Source: Macrostomum lignano (lineage: Eukaryota). Taken from it: a stretch of DNA of 64,000 nucleotides. The translations under genes were made by a program, and so were the position numbers. Below, piece by piece: positions 10,736-59,234 of this stretch; the stretch's first letter is position 1; every line of letters begins with the position of its first letter. The notes under the pieces were generated by a model that made no database searches, was not told the origin of the DNA, and saw only the letters and a list, made by a program, of their open reading frames with translations. The stretch covers positions 62,001 through 126,000 of the forward strand of contig NIVC01002679.1 of assembly GCA_002269645.1 (NCBI GenBank). Direction: 5' to 3'.

Positions 10736-39256
<28,521 letters not shown>

Positions 39257-41919: not shown

Positions 41920-42830
41920 AGCCACAGAATTTCAGCAATTTCTTCATGAGCCTTAGCATCTAGCAATTCCCCCGTAATCCTTAGCATCTCAGCAATTCCC
42001 CCGTAAGCCTTAGCATCTAGCAATTCCCCCGTAATCCTTAGCATCTCAGCAATTCCCCCGTAAGCCTTAGCATCTTGCAATTCCCCCGTAAGCCTTAGCA
42101 TCTCAGCAATTCCCCCGTAATCCTTAGCATCTCAGCAATTCCCCCGTAAGCCTTAGCATCTCAGCGATTCCCCCGTAATCCTTAGCATCTCAGCGATTCC
42201 CCCGTAAGCCTTAGCATCTAGCAATTCCCCCGTAATCCTTAGCATCTCAGCAATTCCCCCGTAAGCCTTAGCATATAGCAATTCCCCCGTAATCCTTAGC
42301 ATCTCAGCAATTCCCCCGTAATCCTTAGCATCTCAGCAATTCCCCCGTAAGCCTTAGCATCTCAGCAATTCCCCCGTAATCCTTAGCATCTCAGCAATTC
42401 CCCCGTAAGCCTTAGCATCTAGCAATTCCCCCGTAATCCTTAGCATCTCAGCAATTCCCCCGTAAGCCTTAGCATCTAGCAATTCCTCCGTAAGCCTTAA
42501 CATCTAGCAATTCCCCCGTAAGCCTTAGCATCTAGCAATTCCCCCGTAATCCTTAGCATTTCAGCAATTCCTCCGTAAGCCTCAGCATCTCAGTGATTCC
42601 TCTGTAATCCTTAGCATCTCAGTGATGCAATTCCTCCGTAAGCCTTAGCATCTAGCAGTTCTCTCAAGGAAATCCTTAGCATCGCAGCAATTCCCCGGAA
42701 GCCTTAGCATCTCAGCAATTCCTCCGTAATCCTTAGCATCTCAGTGATTCCCCCGCGAGACTTGACATCTCAGCAATTCCCCCAAGAGTTACAGCATTTC
42801 AATAATTCCCCCCAAGCCTTAGCAACTCTA
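41920..42830. repeat. About 29-bp minisatellite (ccttagcatctcagcaattcccccgtaat)
   Basis: Direct. Confidence 0.94.
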
Positions 42831-47246: not shown

Positions 47247-47478
47247 ATGCGGGTCTGGCTCGCCAACCTGCAGGCCGTGGTACTGCTCAACGTACTCTCT
47301 AATGCCTAAGGTGTTGACCGTGCCGATGGGCTGGAAGGCCGGGGAGTAGTCCGGTCGCAAGCGGTCCCCCTCCTGGTGTCGGGCCAGCCTTGAGGGTGCT
47401 ATTGGCCTACTGCCCGGTCAGGTGGAGCGGCCGGGTGGGTACCGCGCCCCTTTGAGGGTAGCCCACCAACCTTTTATC

Positions 47479-48999
47479 ATGGCCTTCGAGCCGACTATGG
47501 ATAAACAAGCTATTTCTAGGGACGGGGACCCTTCTAAACCCCAACCTCAGTCCGAAGGACCGGCCGGCCCTGCTGGCAGATCCCAACCGACTGATTCAAC
47601 TGTGGCAAAGGAAGGACCGGCTGGCTCTGCTGGCAGATCCGACCAGAGCTACCAAACTCAAAATACCCTAAGACCTGCCAGCTCCGCTGGTGGATCTAAG
47701 GGAACCGCGAGCTCTGAGCCTAAAGGACCGGCCAAATCTGGCAGATCCGATGAAGCTCAGCGGGCTCGGCTTGAGCGCAAACGCGCTAAACAACGCGCCA
47801 AAAGGCAGGCCAAGAAGGGAGCTGCGGGGGCCAAAGCGGCGGCGTCCACCATGGATGCTGAAGCGACTGGAGTCCCAAGGCAACCAGGCGGGCCGGCCGG
47901 TGGAAGCTCCAGTAGTTCAGCGGCGGCGCTCCCTGGAGCTGCTGCCGCGGCTGCTGAGGCCGAAACCACGGCGCAACAAATGGCCACTGCCAACAAGGAG
48001 GTTCCTTCGGGAGCTACCTTTGCGGCGAAGGCCAAGGCCAAAATCCCGGGAGTGATCATCCAAGGTCGCGACCAGGACTGGACCACTGATCAGCTTCAAA
48101 AAGTGTGGAGTGCTGTTGACTCCTATCTGATTGAGCTGACTGTCGAGGAGGGAATCTCCATCGGCGTTGAGCGGATGGTGCTGCGAAGCACATTCGTTCT
48201 TATTGCTCCTAGCAGCGAGGAGGACGCTCGGCGGCTGCTCCAGCGGCTACCGACGGTCTCCTTGGATGCTGACCTTGGTGGAGCTCTTTTTCTTCGCGAG
48301 GGCCAGCGTCCAAAGACGATACCCTATGTGGTTTTCGTCCCTGCTAAGAGCACCGCAGCTGGACCAGACGTTATTCGCCGGGTCCTACTGCGTCTGAACC
48401 CCGACCTCCCTGCTAGTGGACTGGTGTATCACCGCAAAGTCCGCAGGGGGGAGACGGGCAACTCAATTGTCCTCGGCCTTTCCAGCACTTGGGCGAGTCG
48501 GTACCCTAATGGATCCTCTTTCCAGCTGGGTGCCCTCAAGCTCAAGTTGCGCCGAGGAAAGTCTGCCAAAGGGAAGGCTACTGCCAACCCCGGCATCTCC
48601 GGCAAGAGCGGGGCGCAGTCTAAGGCCCAAGGAAAGGCGCAAGCCGATCCCAAAGCCAAAGCTGCATCTCGCCCCTCTGCTAGCAGCAGTTCGGCGACCG
48701 CGGTAACGGCTCCGGCCGAGCCCCGGGAACCAAACCTGCCAGTCGGAGAAGGAGTTGAGGACGAGGCCGGGTCTTCGGAATCCGAGCTCTCCTCGGCCAC
48801 CTTGGTGGGGTCTGAAGGTAAAGATGCAGGTGAGGAAGCTTCCTCCATCCTGTCATCGGAGCCTGAGGACTCTGCTGGGGGGCCGGTGGGGGTGAGGAGG
48901 CCATGGACGTCGACCAACTCCCATCTCCCAGTCAAGCCCCAGCGGCCTGGGACGAGGACGATCTGTTGTCCAAGTCTCCTTGATGGCCCTGGGCTCTAG
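47479..48999 (+). CDS. Retrotransposon ORF1 (506 aa), no CCHC knuckle; central domain resembles DUF4780-type ORF1
   Basis: Open frame with a basic RKRAKQRAKRQAKK stretch and a VVFVP...VLLRLNPDLP motif. Confidence 0.8.
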   Translation: MAFEPTMDKQAISRDGDPSKPQPQSEGPAGPAGRSQPTDSTVAKEGPAGSAGRSDQSYQTQNTLRPASSAGGSKGTASSEPKGPAKSGRSDEAQRARLERKRAKQRAKRQAKKGAAGAKAAASTMDAEATGVPRQPGGPAGGSSSSSAAALPGAAAAAAEAETTAQQMATANKEVPSGATFAAKAKAKIPGVIIQGRDQDWTTDQLQKVWSAVDSYLIELTVEEGISIGVERMVLRSTFVLIAPSSEEDARRLLQRLPTVSLDADLGGALFLREGQRPKTIPYVVFVPAKSTAAGPDVIRRVLLRLNPDLPASGLVYHRKVRRGETGNSIVLGLSSTWASRYPNGSSFQLGALKLKLRRGKSAKGKATANPGISGKSGAQSKAQGKAQADPKAKAASRPSASSSSATAVTAPAEPREPNLPVGEGVEDEAGSSESELSSATLVGSEGKDAGEEASSILSSEPEDSAGGPVGVRRPWTSTNSHLPVKPQRPGTRTICCPSLLDGPGL

Positions 49000-49022
49000 C
49001 CAGATATTGCATTTAATACAGT

Positions 49023-52000
49023 ATGACTAAGCTCCACGCTGCCAAAGGAGCGACATTCTGTCTGCAAATAAATTTACAGCATTGCGTATCTGCGTCAGTA
49101 AATCTGATGAAGATTGCTGAGCTGTACAGGCCAGGCCTCATCCTGATCCAGGAACCCTGGATGCGCAACGGTAAGTTGCCCAACATTCCCTCTGGCTACT
49201 CTGATTTTTATGTGTGTGGCCCGGGGAACAGCCGCCCTAGAGCGGCTATCCTCGCTGCTAGCCATCTCCAGGCTTGGCTGAGGACTGATCTCTCTGATGG
49301 AGACCTTTGCGTCATCCAATCTAATCATTTCTCTCCGCGTACGTGTCTTGTTGCCTCGGTTTATATCCCAGGCGACAGAGACCCTGCTCCCGAGAGTTTA
49401 CTGCGCCTTGCGCAGTACTGCGAGTCCCAGAACGCTGAGCTGTGCTTAGGGGGCGACCTCAACGCGCACCACAAGCACTGGGGCAGCAAAGATACCAACA
49501 CTAGAGGAGAGGAGCTTCTGGCCCTCATCTCTAACACAAACCTCATGCTCTGCAACCGCGGCAGCACTCCTACCTTTAATAATGGCAGATGGACCGAGGT
49601 CCTCGACGCCACACTCGTTACCCCAAGACTCTTTGACAGAGTCAAGGAGTGGAGAGTCTGGTCTGAGGAGCCCTCCCTGTCTGACCACTGCTTTATCGCC
49701 TTTAATATCGCGGACACTAAAACCCAGTCTCCGATCACTTGGAGACGCAATATCCGCAACACTGATTGGGCGGCCTACAAGGCTGCCCTTGATCTGCACC
49801 TGCAGGAACTCACGGACTTACGTCCGATTGAGACCTGCGAGGATGTGGATCATATGGCTGAGACGCTGACAGGTTGCATTATTGCAGCCTACGAAGCGGC
49901 TTGTCCTGCTCGCGCCTACAGAGGCAAGACCTCGGCGCCGTGGTGGAACCCGGAGCTGGGGAAACTCAGGCGGAAGGCCAAAAGCCTTCATCGCCGTGCC
50001 ATGAAGACCGGAAACCCGGAGGACATGGAGCTTTTCCGGCAAGCCTCCCGCAATTTCAAATCTGAAGTGCGCAAGGCCAAGGAATGTAAGTGGCGCCAAT
50101 TCTGCAATGAATTGGATCAAGACAGACCTACTTCTAGGCTTGTCAAGGCCCTTACAATGGACAAAATGTCCAAATTAGCCATGATAAAAAAGATGATGGC
50201 TCTCTTACTAAAGACCCTGAAGAAGTGCTTCAGCATATGCTTAGCACATTCTTCCCGAGGGTACCTACTGCTAGACCGGAGCCCAACCATTCGATGGATG
50301 GAGCCACCCTAGCGGCGGGCATTGTCACTGAAGACCTAATCGCTCGTGCGGTCAGAACCTTCAAACCCTTCAAATCTCCTGGACCTGATGGTATCTACCC
50401 TGTTCTCCTTCGTGAAGCAGCCAAGATACCCTCGTTCCTGAGACTCACCCGCAATCTTATGCGGGCCTCTATCCAGCTGGGATACGTTCCCAAAAGCTGG
50501 ACTGAAGCTCGAGTAGTCTTTATTCCCAAACCTGGGAAGGGTGACTACCAAAGCGTCAAGGCCTTCCGGCCAATTAGCTTAACGTCAGCAATGCTTAAGC
50601 TCACTGAGAGGCTTATTCTCTGGCGGCTGCTCTCCTGCGAGCTGACAGCGATGCCCCTCAGCAATAATCAGCACGCCTTCCGTACCGGGAGGTCGACTGA
50701 CAGCGCCCTGCATGCGATTGTCGAAAAGATTGAACGGGCGGTACTGGGTGACGGTTACGCCCTGGCTCTCTTTCTTGACATTGTTGGCGCCTTCGACAAC
50801 GTTATCTTTGAAGCGTTTCAGAGGGCCCTTCAAAATCGCAAAGCTCATGCTACCCTCATACGGTGGATCATGTACATGATCTCCAACCGTACGGTCACTG
50901 CCCAACTTCTTGGGCAAACTGCCTCCACCAGAGTCTGTAAGGGTGGACCCCAAGGCGGAGTCCTCACCCCGACGCTCTGGAACCTGGTCATGGACGCTCT
51001 TCTGAGTGACTCCCGACCTGACCCCGTCTTCAAAGTCGGGTATGCTGATGACGTCACGGCCATTGTGGCAGGACCGTCTCCCAGCACGCTCAGGGATCTG
51101 ATGCAGAGCTTTATCCGCAAAGCAGAATCCTGGGCCAATGACAATGGTTTGGAACTCTCTGAGCCCAAAACCGTTGCCATTATGTTTACCAGCAGACTAC
51201 GCTGGAACATACGTCCTCTGCAGCTCTACGGCAGAGATATTGCCTTCGCGCACCAGACCAGATGTCTCGGGGTCACACTTGACCACCGGCTCAACTGGTC
51301 CTTCCACGTGAAAGCAAAAGCTAAGCGTGCCTCAGCCATCCTGGCCCAGCTCCGACGAGCACTTGGCACTTCTTGGGGTCTATCCCCAAAGCGGCTTTGG
51401 TGGATCTATACTTCCGTAGTTAGACCTGCCATTACGTACGCCTCTGTTGTCTGGGTTAGCGCTACCCAGGTCAAAAGCCATGCAGACCTGCTCAACACGA
51501 TCCAAGGCAGAGCGTGTAGGCTCATCTGCAACGCCACCAGGTCCACGCCCTTTGCTGGCATGGGGGCCTTTCTTAATCTTCCGCCTCTTGACCTCTTCAT
51601 CAGGGGTGAGGCGGCTAGAACGACGCGGCGTCTAATTGATGCCGGCGTCAAATTCATTTACATGAGAGCACCTGCTAAGCGGAACCTTGTCCCGCATAGC
51701 GATCTGTGCCTCAACTTTCTCAACGAGTGTCAGGCCAATCGCGTCTTCACCGATGGCATTGCCTCAACGCTCAACCTGAGACAGCGCTACTCCGTAGCTA
51801 TCGACTCGCGCGATAACATCAATGACCATTGGAACCCTGGTGAGCTTCATTGCTACACCGACGGTTCTAAGCAGTCAGCCAACACCGGCTTTGGTGTTGG
51901 AATCTTTCTGAACGGGAGGGTCATCGCTACCCACGCTCAATACACTGGGGTCAACTCCAGTGTTTTCCAAAATGAAGTTCTGGCCATCAGCTCCTGCACT

Positions 52001-52761
52001 GCAGAGCTTCTCGCCACTGGCGTTACTGGTAAGAACATCATTTTCCATTCGGACAGCCAAGCTGCCTTGCACGCCATCAGTGGCTGCAGCACCAACTCTG
52101 CTACAGTCCTTGACTGTATCAAACTCCTCAATGTGTTGGGTTCCGCCAACAAAATTACCCTTAAGTGGGTTCCGGGGCATGTGGGGATCCGAGGAAATGA
52201 GTTGGCTGACACCCTTGCAAAAGTTGGTGCCTCCGGCTCCTCTCTCGGCCCCGAACCTCTTGTCCCGATCCTGGCTGTGTCATCGACTCGCGCATCAAAG
52301 CGTGGATCAGGACTCAGCACCGCTCGACTTGGGCGAACCGCACGAACTGCAGGCAATCCAGAGGCGCTGTCCCTCAGCCCTCTCACCAGCTCCGGAAGCT
52401 CCTCTTGCGCCTCTCGCGCAGAGACATCCGGGCTGCCACCATGACCCTCTCTGGTCACGGCTGCTTCTCCAGGCACCAGTACCTGCAGGGCAACGCCACC
52501 AACGCCACCTGTAGTTTCTGCAACTCAGGTGACGAAACCGCTGAGCATTTCGTCAGCATCTGTCCCGCCTTCACGCGGGCCAGACTCACTTACCTCGGGC
52601 CACACACATCTATTACTGAAGCGTGCAAACCCGAAAACTTTAATCAGCTCATGCGCTACCTTCGGGCCACCCGCAGGGCTGAACTCTCCTTTCCAGAGAG
52701 CACCATAGCTGCTGGCGACACTGGGGGACCTCCCTGGGCGGCGCCAACCCTCCGTCCATAG
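49023..52761 (+). CDS. Retrotransposon ORF2 (APE endonuclease, RT, RNase H, C-terminal Zn knuckle); about 1246 aa if two 1-nt deletions (50186-91, 52270-71) are restored
   Basis: APE: QINLQH, IQEPW, GDLNAHH, SDH. RT: KSPGPDG, FRPISL, QHAFR, GPQGGVL, YADD. RNase H: YTDGS, SDSQAAL, WVPGHVGIRGNELAD. Knuckle: CSFC..ETAEHF..C. Confidence 0.93.
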
Positions 52762-53635: not shown

Positions 53636-55383
53636 TTAAGGCTTGTTCAGATCCTTGCAAAAACGGTTGCACTGGTGCGTGCCAAAGAACTCTTTGATGC
53701 CGTCCGCACCAAGGTTCGTTGGATGGTACCGTGTGACGTCCTTGCAGTGGATTGCCGGGTCAGTCATCCAGATCTGCGGCTTCGAGTTTCCGGACGACTT
53801 TCGGATGCAGCCCTGAAGTAGGATATGTGATGGTTTTGCTATACAGCAAATGCTGAAAAGTGTTATGAACAGATCAGTGCATGGTATAAAAAGAGAACAA
53901 CCTGAAGGTCCACAACGATCAGAAAGCCTTTAGTTGCGTTCCAAGTCCAGTGCGAGAATGCCGTGATGTAATCCAATACCTCGGGCTCAATTCCATACTT
54001 CTTCATCTCGTCAGCGCGCCTCTCCACAGTGTAGTTTAGGTTGTTTGTAAACTTCACAAACAGAGCGTCCTTCCCCATGAACTCTTCGCACGTCATTGTT
54101 CTGCTGGATGGTTGGCTGAGAACAAGCGTCTTTGTTGTAATGAACTTGATCTCGATACCGCTGGGCGTTGACTTACTGAACTCGGTGGCAAGAAAGGCTG
54201 CGATTGTTTGCACCTCGCATGACGAATTGCATCTGTCCAGGATTTTATCGTGCTTATTCATACTTTTTGGCTCTTTTAGTACCATTTGCTGGTCGGAAGA
54301 TGGACTGTCGCCAGAATAGTGCTCCCCAAAATCTGCCAACAGTGCATAAAACGCAAGCCTTTCTGCACCCTGGGCAAAAGGACTTTCGGATATCCTGACT
54401 TTTACGGAGCTGCCGTGCTCCTGTTTAATAGCTTTGTCGTCAATGATACAAGCAATTGAAGATGGAACAACAAACTCCAAAAAGTGGCCTACATTCACAG
54501 GCCTTTTTGACCAGTCTGGAATCTCCGGTTTCAACGCAACTTCAGGCAGATTTTTGGGGCAAGCGACCAACTTGGAATTTTCTACGTTTCGTTCGACTGA
54601 AGTGGCGATCGATTGAATAACCGATCCAGCTATCTGCTCAATTCCTGCCACTTCAAAGTGCTCAATTGTTCTACCGTAGGCGATGGCAAACTTGATCAGC
54701 ATTTGCGCTGTTGACTTGTTGATCTCTCCAAAGTAATAGTCGATTTTCAGTTTTTTTATTTTATCGAACAGATAATGCTCCGTGCGACCCTTTGGGTCCC
54801 CGTTCGGGTGGCTGTCACCGAGCTCGCTTGTATGATATTCATTTCCGTGGCACGGAGCGTCGCAGATGTGAAAAATGATCCGCGTGCCTGCGGTTTCTGA
54901 CCAGTTGAGTTTCGTGGTGGCCTCCAACCCCCCGAACACGTCTTCCGGTGCGTCACCTCCGCCTGTAGCAGCAATTTTTTCCAGAAAGCTGACGCACTGT
55001 TGGCTGTTTTCGCTGAAGTCGAATACTTCAAGCGGAACAGAATCGGTCAAGTCTCGGTAGGCTACAACGGCAAACCGGATCTTCTCAACAGTCGCCTGAT
55101 TTTGCTGGCTGCGAACTAGAGTGTTCACTATCTTCTTTATGCTGTCCTTTGTTCCAGCAATGTGCCCAGCCATACTGCCAGTGGCGTCGAGTAGAAAGCA
55201 CATGTCGACACTCCTCGATTGCTTTATTTGGCTCATGGTCTTTTTAATATTGTCCTGCGTGATGGCCAGCGCCAGCTTGAAGCGTCTGACTTGCTCTTCT
55301 TCATCTGTGGGGTCAAGACCAAACTCCACCCCTCCGTTCTCGCAAATGTTGCGCAGTCTCTTGTTTAGCCGACTTAGGTCCAT
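53636..55383 (-). CDS. vWA domain-alpha-kinase (VwkA/eEF2K-family kinase domain), 552 aa; exons 55383-53902 and 53812-53636
   Basis: vWA: VDMCFLLDATGSM (MIDAS) and GGGDAPEDVFGGL. Kinase: PFAQGAER, VLKE, FVKFTNN, AFSHWTW, VVDLQ|G, TDPAIH, NLG..GI..FF.THQCN.FC. Confidence 0.93.
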
Positions 55384-57412
55384 ATTTTTACTTTTTGGAA
55401 TTAGTTTCCAAAAGCTTGGGGCAAAAAGTCGTGTCCTTTGTCTGCTTTGTGAGTTAAAACTAATGCGATATGAAATTTAAAGGATATACGCTCGTAATAA
55501 CGGACAGGCCATGCTAAGATTTGGATTAAAATTATTTGACTGTACGCTTTGACTTTTTGCTTTAACTGTACTTTCTGACTGTACGTTTTGTTCTAGGAAG
55601 AGTAGGATTTGACTTTATGAGATGAAGAGCGAAAGAGAGGGACCGCACTTTCGTCCCCTTAGCAATTGTACAATCAAGGTAATGAGACTCTGAAGCCGTC
55701 CATTAGGATACAGAGACAGGAATTTAGCAACGCAGAACTTTGCAAAGAATTTCTAGGAAATAGATGAGTCAATTGCTAGAATTTCTTGGAAATAGATGAA
55801 TCAATTGCTAGACTTTCTTGGAAAAAGCTGCTGTACGAGCTGTTGTACGCCATTGTGGGACTTGTGTGCGTTTCGTCCATTCATAGGAAATGACCAATCG
55901 CACATAGAAGGCAAATAATTTTTATAAAATGCGGGAGAAGCGAACTGGAAAGTCCAGTATCTTTGAATTGCACAGCATTGCACACGAAACCAAATTTTAA
56001 CTACGCCAAAAGATTCAAGACGTTTTCCAGGAAAGACGAACCAGTACTAATCGAGTACTTTCGCGACTAGTTTTCCAAAACTGTTATTGACGGTGTTTGG
56101 GCTACATAAATTTATTTGTTTGGGACCATCAAGACTCGGGATAAAACCAGGTATGTCAGTATGTGACTGTAATATTGACGAGTTCAATTCATAAACTGTA
56201 CAGCTATAAATCATATAAAAGTGCATATGTAGCTGCATGCTGTATAGCTATAAGTTTCATGGGCGCATTCAGACGATTCTGGATCGGGATCCAGTTAGGG
56301 GCCAACTAAATACTGGAATCGGGACAAGCTGATGGGAAGTTGCTGAGATGTCAAGGCTCATGGAGGCTATTGCTGAAATGCTGTGGCTCATGAGTTGCGT
56401 CAGATGCTTTGAGCCAAAGCTCATAGGGGATGCTGATATCTTAGGCTAGATAGCTGGCTTTCACTTTCAGGGCTGATGCTTTTTTGGTTTAAAGATCATT
56501 TTTCTTAAGAAACTAACAATAGTGATTGTACAAGGTCATATCCTACGAGCTACATGTAGCTTATTTAATTTTTGTTTCTTCTCAAACGGGCGACGCAGAT
56601 TGCTAGTACCTTGATAAAGTTCGACCATAGACAAAATTTCCTAAACCACACGCACTATATTGATAATTGCATGCATGCTTCGGACAGAGAAGTCTATAGG
56701 CCTAATAAATATAGCATTTCCGGTCGGACATTCATTCCCAGGTCTCTATGGATGCGTCCCTGCTAACTTTCTCTTTTAGTTTTGATTAACACCAATGCAT
56801 AAAGACACGGTGGCCATGTCCAGCATAACAAGATGTACTATACTTTGACTTAGCTGCAAGGGGCTCAGGGTACAGCGGGGAGGCGTTGACGAACATTCTG
56901 CTAACCACTCGCGACCCCTGGCCGCAGCGTCGTACAAGGAGATCCGGTGGGTGCCGGCGTCCGCAGTGCGGTCCACCTCCACGCTCGCCCGTTAGCCCTT
57001 AGGTAGAAATTATCAAGCCTGAAAACGTTGTTGGAAACGTCCGGGTTGGGGCCGAGGTAGGTGAGCCTGTCCTGAATAAAGGCAGGGCATTCACAGTTGA
57101 AGTTACTTTGACTTCATCCCAGCACCTGGGAGGCAGAAGATGTGCTTTAGCTCGTAAGACATAAATCAAAGAGACACGCATAGCTAAATGGGTAAGGGTC
57201 TTGGGTGAGGGAAGGAACTGGATTTTTTAACTGAAACCTTTTGAGTATAGATTTTAAAAATAATTTCCCTCAATTTCATTGACTCCACTTTACTCATGGT
57301 TTATATAGTACATTAAAAATAGCCTCCTCTTTGCTGATAACCAAGCAATTATGCTCGTAATATCAACTCATTACTTCAGCATTCATCCTCATTGCAGACT
57401 TCATCGTATGCT

Positions 57413-59234
57413 ATGTTGTCCATTAATGAACGAATTCGGTGGATCTTCGAGCAGAGCGAGCTGGGATACGGAAGGCCCACCGAGAATGAGGAGGAGCTCG
57501 TCCGCCGCTTCCAAATTGCAATTCAACTGCGAAATCAGAAAGTTCAGCAGCTTTTAAAAGAAGAAGAGCGAAAGGCGAAAGTTCTGACTGATTTCAGGCA
57601 TCGCAACTCAATTCGAAAAGCTATCCTTGCATTGTCGCGGAAAACCAAACACTCTGAGCAAAAAATTTCTACTGCCGTGTTAGTGGCGGCTGTATTTTAT
57701 AGGAAACAGGGCTATCAAGTGATCACCTGTACATCTGACATTCAAGACATTCTGGACCTAGTAGACAGTCCAAGAAGTACTCTTATGCGTGGATGTTCAT
57801 CGGTTTCTTTAGTGGACGAGTTCGAGGGGATGAACTTTTCCGAATGGGTTTGTCAAGAGATGCACGAAGCGATTTCTAGCTTGAAAGCTGTCGTTCACTT
57901 CACGGACAAGTCACAGAATTTCAATCCAGCATCAAAAGCAATTGAGGACAGTGCGTCAATAGTTGGTGACAGCTTCCGTCAGAAGAATCTGAGTTACTAC
58001 TGGGTCCCTATCAGTAGGGATGAAAAAGTTTTAACTGTACTCAAGAAACACTTCGTCGGCATGGAAGCCATTGAATTGAGGAGCAGTGACGCCCTAGTAG
58101 AAAAAATTCTTCAAGATGCGTACAGGCGGTTCCGCAATGCCCAAGTTGAAATCTGCGGTATTCCAAATTTCACCGTAGCGACTGCGACCCCCGATTTGGG
58201 CGCTCCGGATTGGAAGGATGCGGCTGCAGAAGACTTTCAGTACCATGCTATTGGCGTGCCGGCTTCAATACAGAGCATCGTTGACGGTTCCGAACTCAGC
58301 CGAACCGTCTTCAGCGTGCAAGTGAAGAAATCTGCCCGTCCCTTCGCGCTACAAGGACTGGTTGCGGAGTACTTTGCGCTACTCAAAGAGGGAGAAGCGG
58401 CATGGCACAAAGCAACTGTGCGAGAGTTCCTTGTATCCGACTTAAAAAATACGTTCAAGCAGCCTTTCGTTCTTCTCAATACTTGCGAGATTCTTCAGGT
58501 AGCGACGTTTTTATTTCAGGAGTTCAACAGGTTGAATAAAATCGTACGAGTCGTCAAGCCCTTCACGACTGCCGTCATCATTCCAAGGACGCGACGTGCA
58601 GGACTCGATCCAGCACTGCTATGCCCATTTCGATTTGAGAAGAAGCTCGCGGGAGCCAATCAATTTGAAATAATTGACGACGACTGGAATCCAGGTGAAG
58701 TGACGTCAGCTAACCCAGTTGAATCTGATTGCAGAGGTGCCGCTGGTACTGGAAACTCGTCCTCTAAGCAAGCGTCCTCAGGCAACCCTGAAAAGCACTG
58801 TTTCTCCGCTTCTCAACGATTCAAGCTAGTAGATCCAAACATGCCCGTTCTTGACTGTTTTGCGCACTGGACACATGCTATCACTGGCGGCTATTTGCTA
58901 GTGGAAGGTCTTGAGGTCTGTTAACACGCAAACACGCGTCAATTTTTAAGATTCAATAGCATATGTACGAGCTACAAGCGTACTTTTACTTTATATTCCG
59001 AAGCATAGCCTGAAAAACACCTGACTTTTGTAGATATTCACGCGCTGCTCCAAGACGTTGTCGGACGAAGCAAGCGAGGCCCTGATAAAAAGCGCGAAGA
59101 TTCACTGCTCAGACGTCACTCGCTTTTTGCCTTGGAACTTAGGCAAATCCGGCATCCGGAGATACCTTCAGAAGCACGAGTGCAACGACTTGTGCAAGAA
59201 GATGGGACTGCGAAGGGTGTTTATGAGCATGTAA
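57413..59234 (+). CDS. Degenerate vWA-alpha-kinase paralogue (predicted pseudokinase), 567 aa; exons 57413-58915 and 59034-59234
   Basis: Colinear with the gene at 53636-55383 and has the same phase-0 intron position. Keeps FAHWT and IHCSDVTR..WNLG..GI...HECNDLC, but DLQG is replaced by GLEI, TDP by KSA and VLKE by TVRE. Confidence 0.85.

Follow-up and report, generated by a model that had tools for sequence, protein, structure and literature searches.

A divergent gene pair of a vWA-alpha-kinase and a probable pseudokinase paralog in the flatworm Macrostomum lignano

Two head-to-head paralogous genes

We analyzed 64,000 nucleotides (nt) of the Macrostomum lignano genome (assembly GCA_002269645.1, contig NIVC01002679.1, positions 62,001 to 126,000 of the forward strand), hereafter the window, in whose own numbering positions are given. 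At 53636-59234, two genes, here called A and B, diverge from a common spacer. Gene A encodes a predicted vWA-alpha-kinase, while gene B encodes a distant paralog that has lost its catalytic residues and is quite probably maintained as a pseudokinase. Both gene models were rebuilt from the sequence, each with a single intron, and yielded products of 552 amino acids (A) and 567 amino acids (B). The coordinates are the same as those of a preliminary description of this DNA, and the shared intron position reported there was also recovered, as both introns are in phase 0 at a homologous site. The pair is composed of the following features:

53636..53812, minus strand: gene A exon 2, codons 495-552 and stop, with the TDP aspartate, the NLGADG loop and zinc ligands H540, C542 and C546
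53813..53901, minus strand: gene A intron, 89 nt, GT..AG, phase 0, splitting DLQ / G
53902..55383, minus strand: gene A exon 1, codons 1-494, with N-terminal helices, a vWA domain with the metal ion-dependent adhesion site (MIDAS) DATGS, a linker, the alpha-kinase N-lobe and the catalytic loop to ..VVDLQ
55384..57412, no strand: ATG-to-ATG spacer, 2029 bp, containing minisatellite-derived sequence
57413..58915, plus strand: gene B exon 1, codons 1-501, with N-terminal helices, a possible vWA-like remnant without MIDAS, an N-lobe-like region (K to R), a Ser-rich linker and the dead loop ..LVEGLE
58646..58831, plus strand: inter-lobe linker of B, residues 412-473, Ser/Gly-rich, predicted to be disordered, inserted between the kinase lobes
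58916..59033, plus strand: gene B intron, 118 nt, GT..AG, phase 0, after ..VEGLE, at a position homologous to that of the A intron
59034..59234, plus strand: gene B exon 2, codons 502-567 and stop, with KSA replacing TDP, IHC kept, the NLGKSG loop and zinc ligands H549, C551 and C555

Gene A has the features of an active vWA-alpha-kinase

The A protein matches the Pfam family Alpha_kinase (PF02816) over the entire profile (positions 1-185 of 185; 7e-41, 140.7 bits against a cut-off of 21.3) as well as VWA_4 (5e-11, 43 bits against a cut-off of 27), and its PDB matches are EhAK1, TRPM7, ALPK1, MHCK-A, and eEF2K. The residues were assigned from an alignment of A with 69 homologues (70 active-type sequences) from nematodes, cnidarians, rotifers, slime moulds, fungi, mosses, and algae. 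The vWA/MIDAS residues are D66, T68, and S70 (DATGS at 66-70), the GGGDAPED motif, and D175. On the kinase side, the profile match is accompanied by all the catalytic residues, namely the GxxR loop (G339/R342), the lysine K370, the pair D492/Q494, and the metal-binding aspartate D512, together with E433, H516, the Gly-rich loop (N527/G529/G532), and the zinc module (H478, H540, C542, and C546). The order of the domains, an N-terminal vWA with a MIDAS (DxS/TxS) followed by a C-terminal alpha-kinase, is that of VwkA-type proteins, and the AlphaFold2 model is confident (predicted local distance difference test, pLDDT, 88.8; predicted template modelling score, pTM, 0.86). Every motif that the preliminary description had named in support of a vWA-alpha-kinase identity was found. 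Judged from its sequence, A is a complete VwkA-type vWA-alpha-kinase with the kinase domain at its extreme C-terminus, predicted to be catalytically competent, and an ordinary new member of the VwkA family.

The nearest relatives of A outside Macrostomum are found in free-living and plant-parasitic nematodes (Pristionchus, Panagrolaimus, Aphelenchoides, and Ditylenchus; ~35-40% identity) and not in other flatworms, and these nematode proteins have the N-terminal helix motif in common with A. The other two vWA-alpha-kinases of M. lignano, P0005 (locus L002, 46% identical to A) and P0006 (locus L004, 44%), share the intron position of A, and both are solitary genes with no B-like neighbour. The vWA-alpha-kinase family is patchy and locally expanded, for example as adjacent genes in P. 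entomophagus.

Gene B encodes an alpha-kinase-like protein without catalytic residues

The A and B proteins are homologous end to end, well above chance, as had been proposed, with ~21% identity overall. Indeed, BLASTP aligned the last 83 amino acids with 39% identity (E 3e-15) and 427 amino acids with 20% identity (E 1e-12). Broken down by region, the two proteins are 28% identical in the N-terminal helices and 33% identical in the C-lobe, compared with ~17% across the vWA, linker, and kinase N-lobe. In Pfam, B matches the C-terminal part of Alpha_kinase only (positions 119-185 of 185; 9e-10, 39.4 bits against the same cut-off of 21.3), and no vWA match was obtained.

The substitutions in B affect the core of the active site. 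In A numbering, the MIDAS segment is deleted, and G339 is changed to Q, R342 to V, K370 to R, D492 to G, Q494 to E, G495 to I, and D512 to S; the GGGDxPED motif is also lost. In the family alignment, D66 and S70 of the MIDAS as well as G339, K370, D492, G495, and D512 are invariant (70/70), and Q494 is nearly so. The residues retained by B are E433, H478, H516, D519, R522, N527/G529/G532, and H540/C542/C546, in addition to the PF motif of the alpha-kinase C-lobe. The losses and retentions listed in the preliminary description (G-loop, lysine, both aspartates, and MIDAS gone; a 567-codon frame, splice sites, and four zinc ligands kept) were thus all recovered. The preserved part is the fold-determining C-lobe, with the His/His/Cys/Cys zinc module, the NLGxxG loop, E433, and the PF motif, and the catalytic residues are gone, a pattern that points to a pseudokinase. 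With the phosphate-binding loop and four catalytic residues (Lys, two Asp, Gln) changed, B does not qualify as an active alpha-kinase. Among 198 family proteins that cover the Lys/Asp/Asp triad, the only deviants are the B group and six scattered sequences (P0150, P0154, P0170, P0172, P0229, and P0252), which are short alpha-kinase-domain proteins without vWA and with a changed catalytic Lys or Asp, found in environmental assemblies or metagenomes and in the alga Ostreobium quekettii. Degenerate alpha-kinase domains therefore arise sporadically elsewhere.

The AlphaFold2 model of B (pLDDT 72.9, pTM 0.69) is confident for the N-terminal helices and the kinase lobes and moderately confident for a beta-alpha-beta N-domain, while residues 412-473 are disordered. 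Foldseek matched this model to alpha-kinases (TMt 0.52-0.63), namely EhAK1 (4kuj, TMt 0.63), MHCK-A (0.62), eEF2K, and TRPM7; weaker matches were to integrin beta-I and vWA domains. The partial Pfam match, the full-length homology to A, and the modelled structure place B in the alpha-kinase fold. With no profile match and the MIDAS deleted, the N-terminal region does not classify as a vWA domain; from the model, a vWA-like remnant is possible there.

B is 18-23% identical to every member of the family. Neighbour-joining bootstraps were uninformative for placing it in the family tree (A and B together in 47/300), and B is tied to the flatworm/nematode subgroup solely by the shared N-terminal motif and the shared intron. 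The divergence between A and B is near saturation. The common N-terminal helix motif, domain order, and phase-0 intron indicate that B is probably an old inverted duplicate of an A-like gene.

A second gene pair and a decayed copy

The head-to-head arrangement, which the preliminary description had suggested looking for elsewhere in the genome, recurs at a second locus. This locus, L001 (NIVC01001533.1), carries A' (PAA66754.1, Mlig011109.g1, 556 amino acids, 94% identical to A) head-to-head with B' (P0002; PAA66753.1, Mlig014766.g1), which is 79% identical to B at the protein level. The catalytic losses of B at the G339, R342, K370, D492, Q494, and D512 sites are common to B'. The similarity between the window and L001 is limited to the two genes: A, including its intron (the introns alone are ~90% identical), is 94.2% identical, and B is 87.6% identical, decreasing to 69.9% at the 3' end, while flanks and spacers cannot be aligned and the neighbouring genes differ.

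The genomic open reading frame (ORF) of B' has 891 codons because about eleven tandem 28-amino-acid units (SDRRGAAGFAHSAAGNPSYDRGSSDSYY) are expanded in the inter-lobe linker (L001 11340-12300), an increase of ~320 amino acids at the site of B residues 412-473. A single such unit is present in B of the window and in the B'' fragment described below. The array forms an expandable Ser/Tyr-rich disordered insert within the kinase fold, and the GenBank model of B' (775 amino acids) splices out part of it.

M. lignano has three subgenome copies that differ by ~2% single-nucleotide polymorphisms and by very large indels (PMC10733133). The flanks of a third locus, L003, are 96-97% identical to those of L001, which identifies L003 as a subgenome copy of L001 and, in turn, the split between the window and L001 as an older segmental duplication. 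The whole A/B pair was therefore duplicated to a second locus as one unit, an event that preceded the recent triplication of the M. lignano genome. At L003 (5752-10560), A is deleted, and B'' (P0124) is a fragment without codons 1-256 and the start codon that also carries a frameshift. It is a genuinely dead copy that decayed at only ~3-4% flank divergence, and the annotation nevertheless lists a partial protein there (BOX15_Mlig003895g1).

No full-length B-like protein was detected outside M. lignano in a search of 5.8 billion clusters and an exhaustive HMMER search of 1.84 billion representatives. The exact A and B sequences of the window were absent from the protein collection, in which the exon-1 ORF is not on record either. 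Two UniProt models from another assembly, P0001 and P0003, are 95-99% identical to B and represent a B copy with ~99% identity. P0001 uses an in-frame alternative donor (CTA|GTAGAT) 87 nt upstream; the 29 amino acids removed in this way contain the dead catalytic loop as well as the first zinc-ligand His. P0003 is without residues ~26-200, where no canonical splice sites are found, and another subgenome copy with an internal deletion could account for this gap. One further cluster member, P0257 (41 amino acids, on metagenome contigs), had no similarity to B and was rejected as spurious.

Selection on A and B

Nonsynonymous (dN) and synonymous (dS) divergence were estimated pairwise by the Nei-Gojobori method between the two M. 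lignano loci, the window and L001. For A/A', dN was 0.030 and dS 0.158 (omega, dN/dS, 0.19; bootstrap 0.12-0.30). For B/B', dN was 0.110 and dS 0.219, giving an omega of 0.50 (0.38-0.69) that is below 1 (Fisher p 1e-5). Within B, omega is 0.35 in the kinase N-lobe-like region, 0.40 in the C-lobe, 0.59 in the vWA remnant, and 0.70 in the linker. When the ~205 substitutions were placed at random, a stop-free ORF remained in 0.05% of the trials (P = 5e-4), and the B/B' indels outside the repeat region are all multiples of three. The ratio of synonymous to nonsynonymous lineage-specific changes, for which counts are small, is 8:8 in B' versus 5:13 in the pseudogene B''. Gene B is under purifying but relaxed selection, with weaker constraint than A. 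The preliminary description had proposed that B is selectively maintained and had set a dN/dS of about 1 against this view; no such value was seen in B/B', and the intact frames at two old loci, the kept zinc ligands, and the contrast with the decayed L003 copy bear the proposal out. In addition, A and B have diverged nearly to saturation while B and B' both still have their ORFs, splice sites, and zinc ligands intact, which indicates that B was selected for most of its history.

Synonymous divergence is uneven along the genes (0.07 in the A N-lobe versus ~0.2 elsewhere; 0.12 in the centre of B versus 0.42 in its C-lobe), and a three-way comparison with B'' revealed a mosaic history. Both observations suggest gene conversion between the loci, in which case the mean dS probably understates the age of the duplication.

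The intergenic spacer and transcription

The spacer of the window (2029 bp) and that of L001 (1369 bp) cannot be aligned, except for one block and the last ~30 nt. At a dS of ~0.2 this looked anomalous, but indel turnover in the M. lignano genome is very high (PMC10733133), and the duplication is probably older and masked by gene conversion; together these account for the lost similarity. Three features were located in the spacer:

55746..55824, no strand: tandem repeat, 32-nt unit, 2.5 copies
55869..55921, no strand: conserved block, 53 nt, ~78% identical to L001 8748-8799, 486-538 nt from the A ATG
57392..57397, plus strand: candidate spliced-leader (SL) trans-splice acceptor of B, TTGCAG, ending 15 nt upstream of the B ATG

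The conserved block contains ATGACCAAT (a CCAAT box), which is flanked by A/T-rich sequence resembling TATA elements. The block scores 23 in local alignment, a value that 0/200 shuffles reached; the 11-mer alone is not unusual. The block is a candidate for a regulatory element shared by A and B. The preliminary description had proposed a bidirectional promoter, an arrangement in which transcription start sites would lie less than ~1 kb apart and conserved elements would be shared; here the ATGs are 2029 bp apart (1369 bp in L001), B is probably trans-spliced, and only one conserved block, the 53 nt with the CCAAT box, was found.

In M. lignano, ATG forms the end of the spliced leader, and trans-splice acceptors fit [T/C]TNCAG (PMC8629364). 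The TTGCAG hexamer is also found upstream of B' in L001, and the UniProt isoforms P0001 and P0003 start (TSSYAM..) exactly after that AG, which makes it probable that B is SL trans-spliced. No motif of this kind was found within 220 nt of the A ATG. The GenBank annotation of the NIVC assembly consists solely of assembled transcripts with at least 0.5 reads per kilobase per million (RPKM) (PMC5730564), so that the annotated models imply RNA support for A', B', and even the B'' fragment. The identifiers Mlig014766, Mlig011109, and Mlig003895 were not found by full-text search or in the M. lignano supplementary data searched. Part of the spacer (~56334-56570) resembles a 29-nt repeat family at 41949-42828.

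Possible roles of gene B

That B is a maintained pseudokinase paralog is, in our assessment, quite probable. That it acts through A is possible but somewhat doubtful, and our overall confidence in the explanation, lying between these two, is evenly balanced. As the non-catalytic partner of an A-type kinase, for which the TRPM6/TRPM7 kinase-domain heterodimers and the Fam20A/Fam20C pair are precedents, B would no longer phosphorylate anything and would serve as an allosteric regulator, a scaffold, or a phospho-acceptor. It would contact the A-type kinase via its retained C-lobe and N-terminal helices, and its Ser-rich linker could be the phospho-acceptor. The grounds for this are indirect: alpha-kinase domains dimerise, and those of TRPM6 and TRPM7 heteromerise (PMC2827801); the N-terminal helices and the C-lobe are the best-conserved segments between A and B; and the two genes were retained jointly at two loci and are both affected by the loss at L003. 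A stronger version, in which A/B and A'/B' are obligate alpha-kinase/pseudokinase heterodimers produced from a co-regulated divergent gene pair, with the dead paralog gating or targeting the vWA-kinase and the Ser-rich linker acting as a phospho-switch, appears unlikely to us; if true, no earlier module of this kind would be known among alpha-kinases.

Several points weigh against a maintained partner of A. The alignment underlying the AlphaFold2 model consists mostly of active kinases, so that the fold of B is partly imposed by it. The omega of B is 2.6 times that of A, with fast evolution of the vWA remnant and linker (0.59-0.70), and gene conversion can distort pairwise dN/dS. B' tolerates a ~320-amino-acid disordered repeat insert inside its kinase domain, and a subgenome copy, L003, has lost the pair. 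B-like proteins were found in M. lignano only, among 1.84 billion representatives, which gives no sign of long-term conservation across species. Finally, the adjacency of A and B may be only a residue of the original inverted duplication.

This last point leads to an alternative that is equally compatible with the data as regards a partnership, namely that B functions alone. In that case, B would be a maintained pseudokinase with its own partners, such as a scaffold or binding protein, and the head-to-head layout would be the footprint of an inverted tandem duplication carried along by the segmental duplication. We regard this as possible, if somewhat doubtful. Almost no sequence is common to the two spacers, so a conserved shared promoter is not indicated, and B looks trans-spliced while A does not, which suggests differently organised transcription units. 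Moreover, the presumed interaction surfaces of B have diverged, with A and B only ~21% identical, and genes lying 1.4-2 kb apart are expected to remain linked over a dS of 0.2-0.4 without any selection on linkage. Set against this independence are the joint retention and loss mentioned above, the concentration of A-B conservation in plausible homotypic contact regions (N-terminal helices, 28%; C-lobe, 33%), and the survival of one CCAAT block in the spacer. B could also be a redundant duplicate that no longer has a function and is slowly decaying, the omega of 0.5 averaging an earlier constrained phase and a recent neutral one. The raised omega relative to A, the repeat expansion in B', the loss of the pair in L003, the isoforms without conserved segments (P0001 and P0003), and the lack of a detected orthologue beyond M. 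lignano would all fit. However, two independent copies kept ORFs of 567 and 891 codons, splice sites, and zinc ligands across the ~205 substitutions (P 5e-4 if neutral), and the near-saturated A-B divergence marks B as long-lived as an ORF. In the truly dead B'', a large deletion and a frameshift arose at only ~3-4% flank divergence, and its substitution counts differ from those of B' (5:13 versus 8:8, both small). Decay seems distinctly improbable.

The preliminary description had likened the pair to an innate-immune sensor/executor module comparable to head-to-head paired plant NLRs, an analogy that found no support and that we judge highly unlikely. No NLR, sensor, or integrated decoy domain was found in A or B with Pfam, and no immune genes lie nearby, the neighbours being a Notch-like gene and a retrotransposon. 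Furthermore, the only characterised relative, VwkA, has its known role in myosin II and contractile vacuole biology (PMC2827801), and ALPK1 senses through an unrelated N-terminal domain. The observations in favour of the analogy are the function of ALPK1 as an immune sensor, the recurrence of the head-to-head arrangement at L001, the fast evolution of B, the patchy and lineage-expanded distribution of vWA-alpha-kinases in nematodes, rotifers, and other groups, and the wheat resistance genes Lr9 and Pm57, which are reported to be kinase-pseudokinase-vWA fusions. Least probable of all, and hardly credible in our view, is that B keeps a non-canonical enzymatic activity. The change of K370 to Arg preserves the charge, E433 and the C-lobe are intact, and some "pseudokinases" proved to be active, but the phosphate-binding loop and all four catalytic residues (Lys, two Asp, Gln) are gone from B at the same time, and the G339, K370, D492, and D512 positions are invariant in the 70 active-type relatives.

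Comparison with known kinases and pseudokinases

Like A, VwkA of Dictyostelium has an N-terminal vWA with a MIDAS and an alpha-kinase at the extreme C-terminus (PMC2827801). A is ~31-32% identical to the dictyostelid proteins of VwkA architecture P0073 and P0078, with all catalytic and zinc residues (D. discoideum VwkA itself is not in the alignment), and it differs in being part of a flatworm/nematode subgroup that has an additional conserved two-helix motif at the N-terminus. For VwkA, a dead derivative like B is undescribed. Within the alpha-kinase fold, ALPK3 of vertebrate muscle is reported to be catalytically inactive yet essential as a scaffold (PMC9698156, PMC11358020). Unlike B, it has Ig domains, no vWA, and no adjacent active paralog, and it is of unrelated origin. 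A mechanistic precedent for an A:B heterodimer is provided by TRPM6 and TRPM7, as dimerisation of alpha-kinase domains is needed for activity and these paralogous domains heteromerise (PMC2827801); in contrast to A/B, both partners are active and fused to channels, and the exchange segment of TRPM7 has no demonstrated counterpart in A or B.

Outside the alpha-kinases there are broader parallels. Pseudokinase paralogs are common. In Fam20C/Fam20A and ROP18/ROP5, a dead paralog is retained under selection and allosterically regulates the active enzyme; these are other kinase folds, and the interaction is experimental there, while for A/B it would be a prediction. Paired plant NLR genes such as RGA4/RGA5 and RRS1/RPS4 are divergently oriented paralogs kept together. 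A/B has the same divergent layout, without NLR domains or an integrated decoy and with a spacer that is not conserved.

In the literature searched, neither a vWA-type alpha-kinase pseudokinase nor, within the alpha-kinase family, a divergent gene pair of kinase and pseudokinase was found to be described. The novelty claimed for the pair in the preliminary description holds in this narrower sense, since both an alpha-kinase pseudokinase (ALPK3) and alpha-kinase heteromers (TRPM6/TRPM7) were already known. The vWA-alpha-kinases are widespread in invertebrates, protists, mosses, and algae and are almost unstudied beyond Dictyostelium VwkA, and a dead paralog kept beside its active relative at two loci offers a handle on their regulation. 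A/B would add an alpha-kinase case to the paralogous kinase/pseudokinase pairs, and as M. lignano is amenable to RNA interference and transgenesis, the hypothesis is testable. As a lineage-specific pair, it is useful for annotation and for pseudokinase catalogues and leaves current concepts unchanged.

Surroundings of the pair

The following other features were identified in the window, in which an Rfam scan gave no match:

47422-52444, plus strand: non-LTR retrotransposon (long interspersed nuclear element, LINE) with long open frames, 1.2 kb from the A stop codon
49023-50312: endonuclease of the retrotransposon
50225-52444: reverse transcriptase and RNase H of the retrotransposon
~18870-34150, minus strand: exons of a Notch-like gene, with LNR repeats at 18873-20090 and EGF repeats at 23607-24470 and 33446-34144
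947-1922, 22132-23555, 29816-30979, 31678-33479 and 37277-38546: examples of minisatellite arrays

The retrotransposon also has an upstream ORF of 525 amino acids, for which no Pfam match was obtained. Minisatellites are very dense across the window (63 rows in Tandem Repeats Finder, with periods of 16-42 nt and up to 89 copies) and fill the introns of the Notch-like gene. Several long ORFs are translated repeats only, such as that at 37212-38636 (474 amino acids).

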